Assembly (NCBI GenBank): GCA_011109175.1
Contig: RDEW01000002.1
Coordinates: 1,718,111-1,782,110, forward strand
DNA from: Dicyema japonicum
Lineage: Eukaryota > Animalia > Dicyemida
Length of the DNA: 64,000 bases
Direction of reading: 5' to 3'
The notes below the pieces were generated by a model. That model worked only from the letters and a program-made list of their open reading frames with translations. It searched no databases and was not told where the DNA came from. The number at the start of each line of letters is the position of its first letter. The stretch's first letter is position 1. The position numbers were made by a program, and so were the translations under genes. Shown one piece after another: positions 16,371-64,000 of the stretch.

Positions 16371-17045
16371 ATGTACACTCCACTTCCTTTAATTTGTTCC
16401 GAAGACCCCAATGTACTTGAACTAGCATCTAATTTTTAGCTCCGACGTGCTCATCACAATTTGTTGGAGAAAGAACGAAGAAATAATCTAAAAGCCTCCT
16501 TCAATGATCTGAGAGATGTTATCCCTTCACGAAATAGAAAAGTTACCCTTTACTCATGGCAGATGTCCCGGGTTCAGATTTTGACGGCAGCATTGGAATA
16601 TCTTGCATTTATCGAACTTTCCATGGATAAATTGGACGCGTACATGGAGATGGTGGACTCTTATGACAAAGAACTCACTTCTATTCGTACGTCCCCCAAT
16701 AATCTCTTAGAAAAGTTTCCGTCGGATTATTCGGAGTTGAAGGCAATATCTAAATCCGTGGTGGAGAATATAAAAGTCTTTGATATTGATGATTTGGATC
16801 CGATCAAAGGATTTATCAAATATCAGGCAGAAAATGACGTTGGATCACGTAAAAGGAGCTTTGCTGACATGAAAGTAGACACAAGGCCACCTTATGAAAT
16901 GCCACTGGATGGGTCATATTCTGATAATAACTGGATTGATGAGCCTTTTAAGATTTTAGCGTTGAATAACGGGGAGTGCTTGTTTATTGACAATGAACCC
17001 TCTGATAGGGACATTCTCAATAGTATGCTAAAGTTAGAAGATTAG
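16371..17045 (+). CDS. MAX: Max-like bHLH-leucine zipper transcription factor
   Basis: Splicing introns 16413-16439 (27 nt) and 16542-16562 (21 nt) gives MYTPLPLICSEDPNLRRAHHNLLEKERRNNLKASFNDLRDVIPSRNRKMSRVQILTAALEYL; H-E-R E-box residues intact; I-L-V-L heptad zipper. The second intron falls at the position of the K|ASRAQIL junction of vertebrate MAX as I recall it. Confidence 0.8.
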
Positions 17046-22845: not shown

Positions 22846-25150
22846 TTAGAAGTCATCGTCTACAAAAATTAAAATATACGACCTCTTGGCTGAAGTCGCA
22901 ATAATTTTTGAATGTTGTCGTATTTTTCTAAAATTTGATTAACTAAAATAAAACTTTTTATAAAAAAGAGACCAAGTGAAACAACAACACCAACAATTGC
23001 GAAAAAGATGCCGACGCCCAAAGCAGTGCTCTTTTTAGATGAACCTATACGTCGGGAAAATAAACTACTACCAGGCAATGAAGATGAAGAATACGGAGAA
23101 TCTATGAATATGAAGTAATTAATTTACGATATCCAACACAGACTGCTATGTGTTCTTCTCTACATCTCGTGGCAATCCATGATCCGTTATGAGAGACAGT
23201 AATGCAAACAATTTCATCATCATTATGGTTGGCTCGTTGGGAGCCCATGGAGTACTTTCCTAATAATAAAGATTAAAAACCGGTTTATCCCCAATCCACG
23301 TGAGAGTGGTATCATTCACAAAATTCTATAGTCCATGAAAAACCGTCCATTTTTTATTTCTAGAATAATGATTGTGATCACTTTGATTGAGTTTATTTAC
23401 GATATTCTTATCATCCGTCTTTATCATCGAGAGGCCAAACTGAGAACAGAGTCTTGAAGAATCGTGATAAGATAACGATCTCCCAAACATTGTGTAGATT
23501 TTTGAATATATTTTAATTGAAGCAGTCTTATTTTCCAAGTCTAAAAAGTTACTAACAATTATACGCCAAAAATTATTTGTGCAGTTAATATTGGAGTAAT
23601 TATCTAGAATAAATAAAAAATAAAACAATTATTATCATTTTTGTAACAAATGAATCTAGTCTTGTGACATTTATCGTTAATCCATTTTCCTGAAGCATAT
23701 TGAGCATAAACACATCCATATTTTTGTGGTTCCATGGGATAGCCTCTGTCCCAGTTTGTAAAATTCTATAAATGTATGTAAAAAAACTACTGTTTTGAGC
23801 TTATCTCCTCTCATGAGCACGCCATCAATGTAGATTGATCCAAAGTAAATTCCAATATCAAATTCGACATTCTCTATGACTTAATTTTTATTAAGACCAA
23901 TAACAGCACAGTTTTCCACAGGATTAAACGGAGCATAGAGGACCGCATTTCTCATGGCACAAACACTCACGGCCTCTTCCCGAGTAGACAAGAAGTCAAA
24001 TACATAAAATGAATTGTTCTGGAAATAAAATATCTGAGAAAAATAGTCTAAAATTAATTGTTGGATTATACGGAATTTATTTTTTTCACTACAGTCCTTT
24101 GGAGTTGCCCCATTAATAACAGAATCTATTTTTTGTATTAAAAATACCAGTTTCACAAATAATATGTGCGGATTCTGAACAGTCAATGGTGGAAAATTCT
24201 CCATTAGTGGAATCACGAACGACGCATTCCTTATCAATGAGATTGAGTGAAGTCCACGGTAGGTATGACTAAAATATTTAACTCCTAAAAACCGCTAAAT
24301 AATTTTTTTCTGTCATATAATTATTGCTTTCGTTCGTGTGATCCCGACGAAAGATCGGGAAAATACTAACTCTAAAATGGTTGTATATTAACATATTACC
24401 GTGAATAGCACAGTTTTCTGTTCCATCGTTTGGATGAAAATATATCCGTTGTGATCGTATTTGCAAATTCGTTTTGTTGTCGCATAGTCCTTGGGGAAAT
24501 TATAAATGTAATATGTGTGTCCTCTGAAGGTCACCATACTGTCGTAGGGTACTAAACTTGTAATTTATCGAAAACTGTTGATCTGCTTTCCGTAAGTTAT
24601 ATTGATTCCAGTTGAATGGATATCATCTATTTTGATACTTATTACTACCAGATTCGCAAATCCAGTATTTCAAATCATGTTCATTTGTAATTTTCCACTT
24701 GCCAGAACTTGCTATCATTGTTACTCCCTTCCAATCTTTATGTATTGTAATATCTGAATCAAAATTAAAGTAAGTCTATATAAAATGCAATATTACAATC
24801 AGATTAAAAAATCGAGAATTAACAAATACAGTTGATCCTTCCTTTAGTCTCTCCACTCCAATCGACTTGTCTCTGATAATAAGACCTAAGATTCCATCAA
24901 AGAGTAACTAGCTATTAAGTCATTTTCTTTTTGATCTTGTATGTCGACAGCATAAAATTCACCATTAAATGAAAACATACATTCATAAAATATATCAGAC
25001 ACTTGTTTATACATATCTGAAGAAGTGTATGAATGACCATTCCAATTATATACAGATCCATAAGTAGACACTTTTCCGGAACATTGATTCGTCAGTACAA
25101 GTACTAAATTATATCATAACTTTACTGATTAATGCCCAAAGATCAAACAT
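22846..25150 (-). CDS. Type-I membrane receptor with four C-type lectin-like domains, copy A
   Basis: Spliced: MFDLWALIILVLTNQCSG signal (22-nt intron 25125-25104); CTLD1 ...GKWKITNEHDLKYWICE; CTLD2 ...ECVVRDSTNGEFSTIDCSESAHIICE; CTLD3 FTNWDRGYPMEPQKYGCVYAQYASGKWINDKCHKTRFICY; CTLD4 PWAPNEP..NDDEIVCITVSHNGSWIATRCREEHIAVC; Ser-rich stalk; TM ALGVGIFFAIVGVVVSLGLFFI; short tail. More than 10 introns, nearly all 21-28 nt. At least three 1-nt deletions relative to copy B. Confidence 0.85.
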
Positions 25151-26324
25151 TGACTTGTGCATGTAATTCCCAATTTATAGAAATATTAATGAGGCGGTCA
25201 TTTAATTTATCAAATTTGTTTATTGTGTAAACAAATATTTCTATTAATTGCTTTGAAATTGACGTTGATTTATTATTCGAAAACAGAAAAAAAAGAATAT
25301 TTGTAACGAATCATACTCAACTGGCACAATCAGTATTGTTAAATGCTATGAAAACCATTCACGTTCGAAAGGACAATCCTCCAGATGTCTATAAAACATC
25401 TACGTTTTGTTGACAGTACTTTTACAAATCCCCCAATCACTCCAGGGTCTAGAAAACGTTGAGCAAAACGAAAGCGATCTCTAACCCCTAATGATTTATC
25501 GGTGTTAATCAAGAATCATGTTAAGTTCACATAATATGCTAGTTCTTATTTTTGAAGTCAATAATATAAAAATAATAATTTAAAAAAATGTGATTAATAT
25601 GACAGTAGAACAAAGAGTTACCAAAAACTATTAACATTTTTTAACAAAACACAGTCCTTCCACCAAGGAGTATAGGCCACTCAATATTTCCATTATTTAA
25701 ACCCACCTTAGTCAGAACTAATGCAAATATTGTGAAAATTACTACTTCCGCTTTGTTTTTTTAATTTATGCGGTAACCTCGCCTTGTATATATTTAACAT
25801 TGATTGAGTAAGGCTCAACTATCAAAAACCGTAACTCTCATTCTCATTTTATTCTCATGAGTTGATCGATTTTTGGGAGAAATTAATTTGTTAATTTAAC
25901 ACAGTTAATAACTACTAGAAGTTTCAGTAAGGTTGGGTGCACTCCTCATATTAAAAAATATTTCTCATAACGATCTGAAGGAAATGTGCTCAAAAAGTCA
26001 GCTCTTTTCTTATGTTGAGCTCAAATTCACTTTATGACTAATTTTTTGACCGTTTTTGTATCAAATTTTATATAAAAATCAAAATACAAATGATATAATT
26101 ATTTACGTTTTTAGGTTTAAAATTCAAACCTGACTAATGATTTCCCAATAAAGAAAATCTCCTTTCCTTAGGCAATGGTGTAGAAGGAATTTTGGTCACA
26201 ATGTTGGCAGAATAATTTGGGGTACTTATTAGTTAGGTATTACCAGGGCAAACATTTTTTAACCTTAAAATTTGAAAAAATTTAACCTTAAAGGGTTAAC
26301 TTTATTAACCTCTAAACCAAACTT

Positions 26325-35381: not shown

Positions 35382-38300
35382 CATTTTTCTTGTGGCTCCT
35401 GCTTCTCCCCTACGAATAATTTCACTTCTAACAAAGGAGCGTCTTTTTATAACTCCATGTGGATCATCATCCAAGTCCTCTTAGACTAACCATCCAAAAA
35501 TCCGTCTCTGTTGAAGTCTGGCGAGAACGAATATGCAAACCTCCCAAAAGGCCAATCTAAAGAATATCTCACCTCCTTAATAAATAATTCATGAAAAAAC
35601 TCTTTAATATGATTCCTCAGATTGTCCTGCTATAAAAGCCAGATTTAATAATCTGGACCAAAAGAACTCAAGAAAAATGTATTAGGGATCAGACCTATTG
35701 AGATGAGTGCCCGTGTGATGGAAATCACAAATCTCTCGTCGTGAAAGAAAGTTTTGAAACACATACTTTATAATATGGAAACTGAGGATCTCTTGTAGTT
35801 GATTTTAGGCGTTCATCAATAAGACTTGTTCTCGATAAGACTCATCAGCCCCACCAAGTGAGAAATTCAGATTACCCTATCTTTAACGAAAACATATAAA
35901 ATTAAATCTATCTAATTATGTTAGTTGTATGTTGTTTATTGTAAAGTTTAGAAGAATCATCGGCTACAAAAATTAAAATATTCAACCTCTTGTTTAAAGT
36001 CGCAAATAATGTCTTAATGTTGAATTCTGTGAGATTTTTTCTAAAATTAATTTTAACTGAGTAAACTTTTTATAAATAAAAAGGCCAAGAGCAGCAGCAA
36101 TGGCAACAACAATTGCGAAAAAGATGCCGAATCCTATAGCCATGCTCTTTTTGGATGAACCTATACGTTTCTAAAATAAACTCTTACCTAACATTGAAGA
36201 TGCAGAATACGGAGAATCTACGAATAAGAAGTGATTAATTTACGATATCCAACACAGACTGCTATGTGTTCTTCTCTACATCTCGTGGCAATCCATGATC
36301 CATTATGAGCGACAGTAATGCAAACAATTTCATCATCATTATAGGTTGGCTCGTTGGGAGCCCATGGAGTACTTTCCTAATAATACAGAGTTTTACAAAA
36401 CCGGTTTATCCCCAATCCACGTGAGAGTGGTATCATTCCAAAAAATTCTATAGTCCATGAAAAATCTTTGATGTTTTATTTCTAGAATAATGATTGTGAT
36501 CACTTTGATTGAGTTTATTTACGATATTCTTATCATCCGTCTTTATCATCGAGAGACCAAACTGAGAACAGAGTCTTGAAGAATCGTGATAAGATAACGA
36601 TCTCCCAAACATTGTGTAGATTTTTGAATATATTTTAATTGAAGCAGTCTCATTTTCCAAGTCTAAAAAGTTACTGACAATTATACGCCAAAAATTATTT
36701 GTGCAGTTAATATTGGAGTAATTATCTAGAATAAATAAAAAATAAAACAATTATTATCATTTTTATAACAAATGAATCTAGTCTTGTGACATTTATCGTT
36801 AATCCATTTTCCTGAAGCATATTGAGCATAAACACATCCATATTTTTGTGGTTCCATGGATAGCCCTGTCCCAGTTAGTAAAACTCTATAAATGTAAGTA
36901 AAAAAACTGTTTTAGCATCTCCTCTCATGAGCACGCCATCAATGTAGATTGATCCAAAGTAAATTCCAATATTAATTCGACATTCTCTATGACTTAATTT
37001 TTATTAAGACCAAAAACAGCACAGTTATCCATAGGATTAAACGGAGAATAGAGAACCGCATTTCTCATAGCACAAACAGTCACGGCCTCTTCCCGAGTAG
37101 ACAAGAAGTCAAATACATAAAACGAATTCTGGAAATAAAATATCTGAGAAAAATAGTCTAAAATTAATTGTTGGATTATACGGAATTTATTTTTTTCACT
37201 ACAAATCTTTGAAGTTGCCCCATTAATAACAGAATCTATTTTTTGTATTAAAAATACCAGTTTCACAAATAATATGTGCAGATTCTGAACAGTCAATGGT
37301 GGAAAATTCTCCATTAGTAAAATCACGAACGACGCATTCTTTATCAATGAGATTGAGTGAAGTCCACGGTAGGTATGACTAAAATATTGAACTCTTAAAA
37401 ACCGCTAAATAATTTTTTTCTGTCATATAGTTATTTTTTCCCTGTCGTGGTATCCCGACGAAAGATCTGAAAAATATTAACTCTAAAATGGTTTATATTA
37501 ACACAGATTACCGTGAATAGCACAGTTTTCTGTTCCATCGTTTGGGATGAAAATATATCCGTTGTGATCGTATTTGCAAATACGTTTTGTTGTCGCATAG
37601 TCTTTGACGACATTATAAATGTAATATGTGTGTCCTCTGAAGGTCACCATACTGTCGTAGGGTACTAAACTTATAATTTATCGAAAACTGTTGATCTGCT
37701 TTCCGTAAGTTATATTGATTGCATTTGAACGGATGTATCTATTTTGATACTTATTACTACCAGATTCGCAAATCCAATAATTCAAATCATTTTCATTTGT
37801 AACTTTCCATTTGCCAGAACTTGCTATCATTGTTACTCCCTTCCAATCGTCATGTATTGGAAAATCTGATCAAAATTGGAGTAAGTCTATATAAAATGCA
37901 ATATTACAATCGTTCATTAATCGTGAATTTACAAATATCTGATCCTATAGCTTTAGTCTTTCAACTCCAATCGTCCTGTCTTTGATAATAAGACCTAAGA
38001 TTCCATTAAAGTAACCAGCTATTAAGTCATTTTCTTTTTGATCTTGTATGTCGACAGCATATATCCAAAATAACATTGACCTTGTACATCATGCATTCAG
38101 ATTGACATCTGAAAAATAGTATGCATGACCATTGGAATTATATATAGGTCCTATAGTACCCAGTGTTCCAGAACATTCGTCAGTACAAGTACTAAATTAT
38201 ATCATAACTTTACTGAGTAATGCCCAAAGATCAAACATTGACTTGTGTGTGTAATTCCCAATTTATAGAAATATTAATGAGGCGGTCATTTAATTTATCA

Positions 38301-39020
38301 AATTTGTTTATTGTGTAAACAAATATTTCTATTAATTGCTTTGAAATTGACGTTGATTTATTATTCGAAAACAGAAAAAAAGAATATTAGTAACGAATCA
38401 CACTCAACTGGTACTATCGATATTGTTAAGTGGTTATTCTCAATGCTTGAATACCATCTACGTTCGCAAAGGCATCACATTCAGATTTCGTTGACACCAC
38501 TTTTACTTAATCCCCGTCCCACTTCGGAGGTTTAGGAAAAACGAAAGCTGTCTCTAAACCCTAATCATTTTTATGTGTTAATTCAATATTATAGAAATAA
38601 TAAGTATAAAAAATGTCATTTATAAAACATTAGAACAAAGAGTTGACCGAAACTATTAATATTTTTTAACAAAACACTGCCCTTCCATAAAGGAGTAGGT
38701 TTGTTTCCATTATTTAAACCCATTTTAGGCAGAACTAATGTAAATATTGTGAAAATTACTACTTCCGTTCTGTTAGTTTAAATTTATGTGGTAACCTCGC
38801 CTTGTATATTTTTAACATTGATTGAGTAAGACTCAACTATCAAAAACTGTAACTCTCATTTTCATTTTATTTTCATGAGTGGGTCGATTTTTGGAAGAAA
38901 TAGCTTATTAATTAAACGCAGTTAACAACTATCAGAAGTTTCAGTCAAGGTTACTGCAAAACAATTTACTTGAGGATCTGAAGGAAATGCGCACCAATAA
39001 GTCAGCTGCTTTCTTATTTG
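35382..39020. repeat. Segmental duplication block B
   Basis: Collinear paralog of 22150-26040. Confidence 0.95.
35908..38238 (-). CDS. Four-CTLD type-I membrane receptor, copy B
   Basis: ATG 38238, same micro-intron layout as copy A; intact APNEPTYNDDEIVCITVAHNGSWIATRC and IFIPNDGTENCAIH where copy A is shifted, but has its own indels (e.g. near 36855-36870). 3' end approximate. Confidence 0.85.
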
Positions 39021-44134: not shown

Positions 44135-45600
44135 TTAACTACTAACTAAGTGATCCCGGTTTTCCGGGTTCTCGTTTGGAGTCCTCGAAGATCCAACAGA
44201 ATTGGTAAAAAATGGGGACGGTCTCATTCTCCATAGATTTCCCGCATTTTCTAGATAGTCAGATATAGAGAGTAAAGCGGACATTGCCCACTGTAGAAAT
44301 GACTTCACTCTCCACCTTAGGTGTTCTTTAACATTCAATACGTTATCCACAGTTTTCTTATTTATTATTTTCAAGGCAGCAAGTTCTGCGGCTTCTAATT
44401 CTTGAGACGACAATTCAGAAATCATCGAGCTCCAGGAAGGACATGTGTATTCGATTACTAGCAGTATGTGTTGTCTGTAAATTTTCTGTAGTAAGAAGGT
44501 GTTGCGCCCGAATGGTGATTGGGACAAAATTTTCAATATGTTGGTCCTCCTCCTGACTTTGGTAATAACGTCATTGACGTGTTGGCCGAATGTCAGGAGA
44601 GTATCCAACTTTAGTCCTAGTATTGTTGGAGACTTATTCATAGGAATTTCATATCTAAGCAATTTGATTTTGGGAGAGTATGATGATCTTCTATATGTAG
44701 AGAAATTTGTTATAAACGACTTTCCTGTAGAAACTTCCAGTCGATTTGATATGAGCCAATGTTCCAACATACCAATATAACTTTGAAGTTTCATCCCTGC
44801 CTTCTTATCGTTAGTCTCTCGTCGCAAGAACAATGTCATCTGCGTATGAGAGTATCAATGTATCGGGATCGTCATTGGTGGGAAGGTCATTGGTGTACAG
44901 GTTGAAGAGCAGGGGAGAGAGGTGAACCTTGAGGGACACCATTCGGCAATAAACGGGATTTAGATTTTCTGTTGTCTGACATCACTTGTCCTCTTCTTCC
45001 ATTTAAAAAGTTCGACAGCCATTTTTTAATGTTTGGATTTATAAGAGTGTCAGAAATGTTTTCTATAAGCAGCGTCCGGGACACGGAGTCGAATGCTTTC
45101 TTCAAGTCTATTGAAGCCATTATGGTCCCTTTATGTGGGTTTGGATAGGAGGATCCATCAGAAATATATTGAGTTAATTTTGTTAGGTGAGTCGTAGTAG
45201 AATGATTTTCACGGAATCCATGCTGGAATACTCGATTTGGTACAATATCTTTGATTTGTGTTAAGATTAATTTTTCTAAAATTCGGGACATCGCACATAG
45301 GATTGCAATTGGACAATAAGAAGAGGGGTCGTTTGCAGATTTGTTTGGCTTCCAAATTGGCAGAATTATTGATTTTCTCTATATAGAAGGTATCATATTA
45401 TTGTTCACAGATAGAGTATAAACGTATGATAGGAATTCGGTTGCTTTTTCACCAAGGTGTTTCAGTTCCATCATCGAGACATTGTCAGCACTTCGGGACC
45501 GGGAGTTTTTGGCATCCATGATTGCGTTTCGAACTTCTTACGGAGTAAAGACAATCAAATCATATGATGGATACAACTTCTTCTTGTAAACTCTGTGTAA
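44135..45600 (-). mobile_element. Jockey-like LINE RT and 3' end
   Basis: QHGFRENHST, IDLKKAFDSV, GVPQGSPLSP, ILGLKLDTLLTF; ends ccgggatcacttagttag. Confidence 0.85.
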
Positions 45601-51795: not shown

Positions 51796-52064
51796 ATTGT
51801 ATGTGAACCTTAAATATCCACTATTCGATAAATTATGTGTCCAAGTACTGACATAAACTATTTTTTATCGTTGGCAGATTCTTCATTTAAAAGCGGGGAG
51901 TTGTCAAACGGTGTGCCGCGAGACAATATCTAGTGTGCCGCCTGCCGAATACAAATTTGAATAAATTTATATACATTTTTTGACCTAATTAATTTAAAAA
52001 GATAAACAAATTAAAATAATTACTAAAATTAAAATAATCATTTTTTTATTATATATTTGTAAAC

Positions 52065-54235
52065 ATGCAACGTGCGTTCGATTCGGTGGCGTTAAAACTC
52101 TCTCGAGTTGGCAAAAATGTTGAAAGGAAAAAAGGAGAAGGGTCACTTGCGTTACCTGATGGTATGAATGTAATTCTTGCCATATCCGAGAGCGTTGTGG
52201 CAGATGACCCAAAAGAATGGGCGAGGCAGGTAGTCCTGCAGGTACGTAGCAGGCTATCTCGAATGCCCTGGAATGGATGGCCATACTTGGCGGAGCTCTG
52301 CAGTGGCAGATTCAGTACTGCTATATCTGTGAGTGAACTCAAGAAGATGGCTGTAGGCAAAGAGGGTACTGGTCTAAAGGGGCGGGGACCAGGTGACCAC
52401 AACTGTCAAAGAGAGCACGAGCACCAGAGCTGTGATACGTTGCAGCTCAAGCATGTTTATGAGGTCTTTGCGCGGAATCTCGCTGCAGCGGCAGATGTCC
52501 CACTTGAGGACCGTAGATTTACCCGCAAGATTCCTCATTGTAAGGTTAACGGTGTAGTGTTAACCTGCATCAATAAGGCTGTGGCTTATGCGGTGGAGGC
52601 TAAGCCAGTAGGGTCATTGGGTGACATCTCCCTAGTGCTGTATGCAGCACAGATCACCTATGAGGAATTGACGGACAAGCCCAGACCACCCAGTAAATGG
52701 AGGGAGCAGATCTGTGCCAAGATTGCTTGGAGACAGACTGAGCTGGAAGCACTGGAGGGGCACATAAGTAGTGTGGCGAGAGGGGTTAGAGGAAAAGCAC
52801 CGGCTATAGTAAAGGGGCTAATTAGTAAACTCCGTGTTCCCAAATGGGACCTCAAAGAGTTGAGGAGGGCAAAGGTGGAGTTAGAGGGGCAATAATGGTG
52901 TATAAGAGGAAACTCTATACACATGAAAGTCGGTGTAAGAGAAGGAGAGAAAATAATCTGTTTGAGTTTAATCGCAGATTGTTTTACCGTCGCCTACACG
53001 AAAATGGCCATAGTGTATGTTCCCAGGAGGACGCGGAAATGCTTTCCACATGGGGTAGTATGTGGGAGGCTAAACCACGCAAAGGAAATGCGTGGAATGT
53101 CCCGTACAGCGCCGCTCTTTTCTTGGCGGAATTTTCGAATTTTCGCAAGAAATTTGAGGCTGTAGTGAGACATCTCCCATATTGGAAAACGACCGGGGTC
53201 GATAAAGTGTATAATTTCTTTATTAAAAGATGCACTTCATTGCACGAGTCTATGTGTCGTGTATTACAGAAAAGCATCACTAACCCGGAAACGATTCCTG
53301 ATTGGGCATGCACAGGGATAACTTATTTGATCCCAAAGCTGAATAACCCCCAGTCTGCGGCAGATTATCGACCGATAACCTGATGACCAAATTGGTGGCT
53401 AATGAGGTCAGGAGTTTTGTAGAAGCAAATGGGATTCTTTCCGAGAATCATTTGGCTACTGTGCGAAATTGTCAGAGGGCAAAAGAGCAGGCTTTGATCA
53501 GCAAATGCCTTTCTGTGTCTCACGGAAACTCACTTTTGTCTATGTGGGTTGATGTGAAAGAAGGCTTACGATTCAGTTATCATTCTACTTTGTCGAGTGC
53601 CTACACAGTCCTGTGTATGCCTGTGTGGTTCATCAGCTTTGTAGTGGCTGTGATGAATAGGTGGAGTATTCATCTGAACTATAATAGCTGGCACCGGATA
53701 GGCGAGGTAAAACTCAAGAGGGGATCCTTCAGGGGATAGGCATGTCTCCGTTACTCTTTGTTCTCTGTTTGGAGCCATTGAGTCGCCGCCTCAATGACCG
53801 GTTTGAGCAAATACCAGTTCATTGTGAAGGGGTCTGTTTCAGTACAAATCACCTTTCTTTTTATCGATGACCTGAAGATGTATGCTCGAACAGCCGAGGA
53901 GCTCTACTCCATGGGGGTCTGTGCCAGGGAATTCTTTGAGAGTATAGGGCTAGATTTGAATTATTTCAAAGTCTGCGACTTAACACGCAAGTATGTAGCG
54001 AGTTAGTAAGAGTCCTAGAGGAACACGAAGGATATAAGTATCTGGGTGTTACCGAAACTCCAAAGTCCCTTATAATGCCTGAGACAAAGCGACAAATTAC
54101 TGAAGGCATCCGTAAAAGAGCAGCGTTATTGTGTAAGACGTCTCTAAATGCAAGGAATTTGTTCCTAGCATTAAATGAGTATGCTGTCTCGCTGCTAAAC
54201 TACTACATAGGTGTTGTGGAGTTTGAGCCCTACGC
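52065..54235 (+). mobile_element. R4/NeSL-like non-LTR retrotransposon, largest copy
   Basis: HLPYWKTTGVDKVYNFFIK, GITYLIPK...DYRPIT, KRGSFRGDRxSPLLF, FLFIDDLKMYA, YKYLGVTE, LNARNLFLALNEYAVS; frameshifted. Confidence 0.85.
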
Positions 54236-63650: not shown

Positions 63651-63829
63651 TTATTTAGAAAAAAAGCAGATAAAAGCTCGCAATTATAACGATCTCATAA
63701 TGAGAGTTTTTTTAGGTTATCTTTTATCTTTTTTTCATTTATTTACGACTTAAGTATTTGAATGATAGACAGGTTTTTGCTATCAAATTTAACAAGTTCG
63801 ATATTTGCTTTCAGACAACAGAAGTGAAG

Positions 63830-64000
63830 AAAGCCCCACCAAGTGAGCAGATTCAGAGAGGATTCCCATTCATTTAACGAAAACATATAAAATCTAAATC
63901 TAATTATGTTAGTTGTATTTGTTTATTGTAAAGTTTAGAAGAATCATCGGCTACAAAAATTAAAATATTCAACCTCTTGTTTAAAGTCGCAAATAATGTC
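63830..64000 (-). CDS. 3' end of a third CTLD receptor copy, running off the window
   Basis: Nearly identical to 35845-36012, including the last micro-intron gttgaatattttaatttttgtag. Confidence 0.8.

Follow-up and report, generated by a model that had tools for sequence, protein, structure and literature searches.

The mannose receptor family (MRC1, PLA2R1, LY75/DEC-205 and MRC2/Endo180) consists of type I membrane proteins with tandem CTLDs, mostly without sugar-binding residues. The protein encoded by the Dicyema japonicum genes considered here is apparently built on the same plan, but it lacks the N-terminal Cys-rich (ricin-type) and FNII domains, and its tail, as tentatively spliced, has no motif in common with that family. 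No exon lies upstream of the signal-peptide exon within the conserved gene unit, and CTLD1 comes directly after the signal peptide. A preliminary description of the locus had likened the product to a shortened mannose receptor; it was right as to the missing ricin and FNII domains, but with four CTLDs against 8-10 the resemblance is one of analogy and not of family membership.

A second point of comparison is offered by the NK-complex receptors (Ly49, KLR, CLEC) and the nematode clec genes, which form lineage-specific clusters with gene conversion, many pseudogenes and birth-and-death turnover, and which change fast in the ligand-contact part of a CTLD that does not bind sugar. The NK receptors are type II proteins with a single CTLD, and the nematode clec products are mostly secreted. 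The Dicyema genes likewise form a lineage-specific multigene cluster, but their predicted product is a type I protein with four CTLDs, of which the distal one alone is variable.

The closest described pattern is the accelerated evolution and "ASSET" of snake toxin genes (PMC2474615, PMC2711939), and more generally venom gene families have short exon segments far more divergent than their introns, with pN>pS (PMC2474615, PMC2711939, PMC6062510). The Dicyema genes resemble these in having patches that differ by 31-36% against introns that differ by 2-3% in recent duplicates (copies A, B and C). They differ in that the product is a predicted membrane receptor, not a secreted toxin, in that the synonymous sites of the patches are not raised, and in that no donors were found.

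Dicyemids are extremely reduced, 30-cell parasites of cephalopod kidneys, and we know of nothing that has been described about the molecules at their interface with the host. Lectins go unmentioned in the D. japonicum genome paper (PMC6736024), and dicyemid C-type lectins are the subject of no paper that we found. A family of four-CTLD membrane proteins that is specific to this lineage and has 20 or more members would be a concrete candidate for the dicyemid-host interface, the more so as the distal domain of this candidate carries patches that appear to be under selection for change. The reading we favour, with reasonable though by no means full confidence, is that the locus holds a cluster of 2.6-kb paralogues of a Dicyema-specific surface receptor, the distal CTLD1 patches of which have been diversified by selection. 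The patch-level pN/pS analysis and the HSP70 control for assembly error that bear on this reading are new in the present analysis.

Gene structure and predicted product

The window, by which we mean the whole 64-kb stretch of DNA analysed, contains short open reading frames in alternating minus-strand frames, which join into a single gene through tiny introns. The gene model was set by alignment of four close copies, A to D, and for copy A is as follows.

22846 to 25150, minus strand: copy A, complete from start to stop codon, 20 exons
25150-25126, 25103-24909, 24885-24797, 24775-24649, 24626-24576 and 24551-24400, minus strand: exons 1 to 6
24371-24293, 24268-24148, 24125-24072, 24047-23898, 23873-23791 and 23765-23627, minus strand: exons 7 to 12
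23603-23565, 23540-23382, 23359-23281, 23259-23128, 23101-23072 and 23044-22955, minus strand: exons 13 to 18
22927-22883 and 22859-22846, minus strand: tail exons, tentative
23101-23072, minus strand: exon 17, Ser-rich stalk, N-terminal to the membrane helix
22959 to 23024, minus strand: transmembrane helix, 22 hydrophobic residues and then Lys, from the translation
25151 to 25327, minus strand: conserved 5' flank, 2-3% difference among A, B and C

The start codon (25150-25148) and the TAA stop (22848-22846) agree with the coordinates and strand that had been given for the gene, though in copy A this TAA can be reached solely by way of the last two introns of the model, which are small and tentative. 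The 17 introns before the membrane anchor are 21-29 nt long and have GT..TAG borders in all four copies. Among A to D the splice-site columns are variable in 2 of 85 cases against 53 of 325 for the other intron columns (P 1.6e-4), and both of the variable splice-site columns are an alignment artefact in copy B.

The conceptual product begins with a hydrophobic leader, and only about 15 residues separate the start codon from the beginning of CTLD1. CTLD1 is followed by a linker with N-x-T sites, CTLD2, CTLD3 and CTLD4, and then by the Ser-rich stalk, a 22-residue hydrophobic helix, lysines and a short tail. The translation shows the hydrophobic helix with its Lys-rich stop-transfer, and a type I topology and a location at the cell surface may be predicted; the earlier view of a receptor with four CTLDs in tandem is supported. 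The tail, as tentatively spliced, is unlike between A and B, C and D; a Y-x-x-I tetrapeptide present in A is not conserved.

The conserved stretch at 25151 to 25327 is probably the promoter and 5'UTR of copy A. A 17-nt inverted repeat lies within this flank (25171-25187 and 25234-25250), and the same repeat is found in the 5' flank of copy B (38259-38275 and 38322-38338). In both copies its arms are 94% complementary and 46 nt apart, and it lies 20-100 nt ahead of the ATG; a role as a promoter element is possible.

Identity of the four domains

The domains of copy A occupy the following positions.

24649 to 25103, minus strand: CTLD1, exons 2-4, open frame
24148 to 24551, minus strand: CTLD2, exons 6-8
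23627 to 24125, minus strand: CTLD3, exons 9-12, in frame, with EPQ...WIND
23128 to 23603, minus strand: CTLD4, exons 13-16, with the motif EPT

Searches for Pfam families, homologues and structures were run exon by exon, each exon being half a domain, and the use of joined models, in which X marks each break, was confined to local alignments, counts of substitutions and comparisons of profile with profile. The raw open reading frames gave no Pfam match, owing to the shortness of the exons. The C-terminal half of CTLD3 of copy A scores 18.5 bits (E 0.003) against Pfam Lectin_C (PF00059), and that of CTLD4 scores 14.5 bits in copy A and 16.3 bits in copy B (E 0.017-0.06); all are under the cut-off of 22.6 bits, as each exon carries only half a domain. 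In the 76%-identical paralogues E to H, where a six-frame search reads through one small intron, CTLD3 reaches 26.6-27 bits, above the Pfam cut-off.

Structure searches point the same way. Fifteen of the 18 weak PDB matches to the C-terminal half of CTLD3 are C-type lectins, among them DEC-205 (LY75) and Endo180 (MRC2). Nearly all matches to the C-terminal half of CTLD4, and every one of those at E 0.001-0.01, are CD23, SP-D and MBP-A, with alignments that fall at the C-terminal end of the CRD. At E 0.1-0.5 the matches of these two exons include selectin, DEC-205, Endo180 and DC-SIGN. The N-terminal half of CTLD4 has a single match among 1.84 billion proteins, a canonical 5xCTLD protein (E 2.3e-4), and no other relative in that set; the CTLD4 profile is similar to the canonical repeats of protein P0001 over 101 columns (P 3.3e-5). 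The proposal of four CTLDs is thus borne out exon by exon for CTLD3 and CTLD4 by Pfam and PDB, while CTLD1 and CTLD2 are more weakly assigned to the fold by internal profile similarity (CTLD1 to CTLD2, P 1.6e-4; CTLD2 to CTLD3, P 2.4e-5).

CTLD2, CTLD3 and CTLD4 have all four framework cysteines (C1-C4 and C2-C3) where a CTLD should have them. CTLD1 has the outer pair, C1 and C4, without the inner Cys pair, and keeps a "YYFS"-type strand. Compared with Lectin_C (PF00059), the Dicyema domains share this YYFS-like strand, the framework Cys pairs of CTLD2-4 and a C-terminal half of the form W...C...C, but they are very divergent, and in place of EPN/QPD with WND they have EPQ/WIND in CTLD3 and EPT/WIAT in CTLD4. 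The EPQ and EPT motifs, and the absence of EPN and QPD, are as previously noted. None of the four CTLDs has the full set of residues of a Ca2+ sugar site (EPN/QPD, WND and an extra Glu): in CTLD3 EPQ...WIND is present but the Glu ahead of C2 is missing, CTLD4 has EPT...WIAT, and CTLD1 and CTLD2 have none of them. Since paralogues E to H have KDS at the place of EPQ, a conserved Ca2+/sugar site in the family seems unlikely.

Copies in the window and in the genome

Two whole genes lie within the window, together with the tail of a third.

about 35957 to 38238, minus strand: copy B, whole gene
63826 to 64000, minus strand: 3' end of copy C, from the final part of exon 19 through the last intron and exon into the 3' flank
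G000:C112:1781942-1784532 (locus L032): body of copy C, beyond the end of the window

Copies A and B are 90% identical over 2.6 kb, introns included. The three copies in 64 kb that had been reported are therefore A and B, which are complete, and a third of which only the last ~170 nt of the gene fall within the window; besides A, B and the tail of C, the 64-kb window contains no further copies. Copy D is located 150 kb upstream of the window copies on the opposite strand, and five more copies align at 69-76%. An exon-peptide search of the whole assembly found 21-24 family loci with the same exon spacing, so that a multi-copy family of at least 21 loci is supported. Paralogues E to H (L035-L038, on C223, C235 and C112 at 2.23-2.26 Mb) form a second clade of the family; they are 0-3% divergent within the gene and cannot be aligned outside it. 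About 6 kb past copy C there is an isolated fragment of 49-77 nt (L042, G000:C112:1790020-1790068), a gene relic that matches the last part of exon 4 (CTLD1) at 86-88% identity.

It is very improbable that the copies are uncollapsed haplotypes, or that their variable patches are a mis-assembled consensus of mixed paralogue reads, although the assembly does contain indel errors and was made from pooled animals with a reported heterozygosity of 1.24% (PMC6736024). A, B and C lie on a single contig free of Ns, with spacings of 13 and 28 kb, and they differ overall by ~10% against that 1.24%. The homology between copies runs from ~230 nt ahead of the ATG to ~130 nt past the stop, with unrelated flanks beyond; given that it stops at the gene borders, the copies are not haplotypes. 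As to mis-assembly, in A and D the frame stays open through the patches and the framework cysteines are retained, and the same pattern recurs in another clade on other contigs.

An origin of the 2.6-kb unit as a transposon was also considered and is unsupported, as no terminal inverted repeats flank the unit.

Hypervariable patches in CTLD1

The variation among copies is concentrated in three short patches of CTLD1, given here by their positions in copy A.

24954 to 25029, minus strand: HV1, alpha-1 helix region of CTLD1
24799 to 24869, minus strand: HV2, after the WIGL-like strand, at the start of the long-loop region
24732 to 24764, minus strand: HV3, at the place taken in canonical CTLDs by the EPN loop

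Among A, B and C the nucleotide divergence is 15-23% in the CTLD1 exons, 1-3% in the introns between them and 2-7% in CTLD2-4, and these counts per segment confirm the strong divergence of CTLD1 against the weak divergence of CTLD3-4 that had been noticed by eye. In HV1-HV3 the same copies show 31-36% mismatch, with indels, against 2-3% in the 5' flank and introns 1-4; the contrast between patches and non-coding sequence has P values of 1e-16 to 1e-21, for patch borders that were drawn after seeing the data. Relaxed constraint alone is insufficient to account for this, because neutral decay cannot exceed the local non-coding rate.

Within the patches pN is 0.38 and pS 0.08 for the pair A-C (ratio 4.8, P <0.001), 0.34 and 0.06 for A-D (ratio 6.0, P <0.001) and 0.28 and 0.08 for C-D (ratio 3.4, P 0.009), in a comparison of only four sequences (A-D) and on synonymous counts that are tiny (2-2.5 changes). 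The patch pS of 0.06-0.08 in these pairs equals that of the rest of the gene, and the excess is for this reason specific to amino-acid-changing sites. In pairs with copy B the patch pN/pS is ~1, but synonymous counts there are meaningless because the frame of B is scrambled in the patches. Over the whole of CTLD1 pN/pS is 1.0-2.5 and NG86 dN/dS exceeds 1 in every pair, the excess being significant only for A-C (P 0.017, uncorrected), and taken alone this whole-domain ratio does not prove selection. In the E-H clade the most variable stretches (up to 22%) are again CTLD1 exons beside near-identical introns. The idea of a diversifying membrane-distal tip, for which dN/dS by domain had been proposed as a check, is thus supported both by the patch pN/pS and by its recurrence in E-H, the ratios being 3.4-6.0 in the patches, 1.0-2.5 in CTLD1 and 0.27-0.35 in CTLD2-4.

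It has to be asked whether the patches have been replaced wholesale, either by an ASSET-like exchange of exon segments or by gene conversion, with lost or unassembled paralogues as the source, in which case the signal would reflect a mutational mechanism plus selection and not stepwise positive selection. The indels and dense substitutions of the patches, their sharp borders beside near-identical introns and the evident recombination between copies are all in keeping with such replacement, and ASSET has the same kind of contrast of exon against intron (PMC2474615, PMC2711939). We nevertheless think it improbable: the patches of A or B are matched nowhere else in the 67.5-Mb assembly, and patch synonymous divergence is at background in the A-C, A-D and C-D pairs, where imported old sequence would raise it. 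Slightly more doubtful still is the suggestion that the patches are targets of dedicated diversification, by exon-segment replacement or focused hypermutation, which spares the 21-24-nt introns. If it were true, a 30-cell animal without known immunity would possess a variable repertoire of surface receptors, and the frame-broken copies would be raw material rather than simple debris.

In the whole 67.5-Mb assembly the CTLD1 segments of A and of B match only A-D. With no donor archive for the patches, the antigenic variation that the preliminary description had offered as one possible role finds no support; host recognition, the other candidate role, would be plausible.

Selection and recombination in the gene body

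The rest of the gene behaves quite differently from the patches. The pN/pS of CTLD2-4 is 0.27-0.35 in all six pairs of A-D (P<5e-4). Changes on the terminal branches of A, B and C in these domains number 16 synonymous and 16 nonsynonymous when pooled, so that the changes private to these copies are ~1:1, as against the ~1:4 expected if they were neutral. Together with the near-invariant splice sites, these signals argue for function: A, B and C were subject to selection up to a very recent time and perhaps still are. Recombination between the copies is evident from the distribution of shared sites: those that group A with B and C with D are concentrated in exons 3 and 11, and the odd copy out is D in the 5' part and A from intron 15 onwards.

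Under selective diversification of CTLD1, the reading we prefer, the protein would consist of a signal peptide, four divergent CTLDs without a canonical Ca2+/sugar site, the Ser-rich stalk, a transmembrane helix and a short tail. In a concerted evolution of the gene body, recombination or gene conversion would keep the gene bodies alike, together with the 21-29-nt introns and a promoter of ~200 nt, and purifying selection would also keep CTLD2-4 alike, while selection for amino-acid change would drive the three CTLD1 patches apart. One patch belongs to the alpha-1 region and the other two to the long-loop region, the usual place of ligand binding in CTLDs, and the patches would presumably contact a ligand. 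The likely function would be to bind, on the outside of the parasite, a variable ligand, probably one that is non-canonical or not a sugar, for which the host renal epithelium, components of the host fluid and other dicyemids are candidates.

Integrity of the copies and a control for assembly error

Integrity was judged by projecting the conserved introns onto each copy and reading the exons singly. Intactness as given by an automatic spliced-ORF path finder was rejected, since the program "rescued" every copy via invented small introns in coding sequence; its value is limited to showing that copy F is open with regular introns. As assembled, A, B and C are each interrupted by frameshifts or stops, a point missed by the preliminary description, and the "expanding" family of which it spoke is not shown at this locus. 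The lesions are these.

Copy A: four 1-nt deletions relative to the other copies, in CTLD2 (between 24434/24433 and between 24334/24333) and CTLD4 (between 23318/23317 and between 23227/23226); CTLD1 and CTLD3 open
Copy B: at least nine frame-breaking lesions in CTLD1, the linker and CTLD3, with in-frame stops at 38091-38089, 37947-37945, 37872-37870 and 36927-36925 and indels at 38178, 38101, 38067, 37916, 37869, 37737, 36976 and 36864; CTLD2 and CTLD4 in frame
Copy C: at least seven lesions
Copy D: one 1-nt deletion near the 5' end

Most of the lesions in A-D are 1-nt deletions, often in short homopolymers. The CTLD1 peptides that had been quoted for A and B are indeed present, the interruption marked in that of B being an in-frame TGA (38091-38089). 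Copy F (on C235) is open through all exons, and E, G and H are frame-broken, mostly in CTLD1.

The D. japonicum assembly (67.5 Mb in 377 scaffolds, GC 36.7%, with very small introns) combines a Platanus assembly of Illumina reads with a Falcon assembly of PacBio RS II reads, and no polishing of it is described (PMC6736024). Genes of the HSP70 family in the same assembly served as a control for its errors.

G000:C73:24200-26400 (L052): one frameshift
G000:C57:749300-751200 (L053): one frameshift
G000:C46:605000-607100 (L054): four frameshifts

These six frameshifts, in about 5.7 kb, all fall inside invariant contiguous motifs, the two halves of which are in different frames with -1 to +8 nt between them, as where GIPPAP is followed by RGVPQIEV; one of the six is in a C-run. 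A spacing of -1 to +8 nt leaves no room for an intron. Since three HSP70 genes cannot all be dead, the assembly must carry ~1 small indel per kb, and locally more, and apparent pseudogenes in it need confirmation at the level of reads. With 2.2 and 0.55 lesions per kb, copies A and D fall inside the range of this control; B and C are above it. Assembly error is thus a live explanation for the broken frames, and many of the A-D frameshifts are probably assembly errors rather than gene death; the lesions of B and C may be partly real, because they lie above the control range and include multi-base events; the longer indels and in-frame stops of these two copies are harder to put down to consensus error.

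A reading that deserves weight, though we think it rather unlikely, is that birth-and-death turnover has left A, B and C (D perhaps as well) as genuine pseudogenes, in which the CTLD1 differences are relics of selection in the time before gene death, and that the working members are elsewhere (intact copy F on C235 being an example). It would account for the lesions that run from one in D to at least nine in B, with stops and indels of 2-13 nt, for the excess of B and C over the ~1 per kb of the HSP70 control, and for the open frame of F through all its exons. Dead genes would not, however, be expected to show the constraint still seen in the terminal-branch changes of CTLD2-4, nor to have retained all of their splice sites, and the mostly single-nucleotide deletions, with their frequent position in short homopolymers, are like those that break the essential HSP70 genes of the same assembly.

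Other features of the window

The window is AT-rich, with a GC content of 0.30-0.46; the upper value belongs to a jump at 52001-54000, against 0.30-0.40 elsewhere. No Pfam family matches the two overlapping plus-strand open reading frames of that region (52065-52895 and 52844-53383). In the interval from copy B to copy C, an open reading frame on the minus strand (44135-45291) encodes a reverse-transcriptase domain (RVT_1, E 1.6e-15) and adjoins one of 234 aa without a family match, the two forming a retroelement remnant. At 16461-17045, on the plus strand, a 194-aa open reading frame contains a helix-loop-helix DNA-binding domain (E 7e-7).
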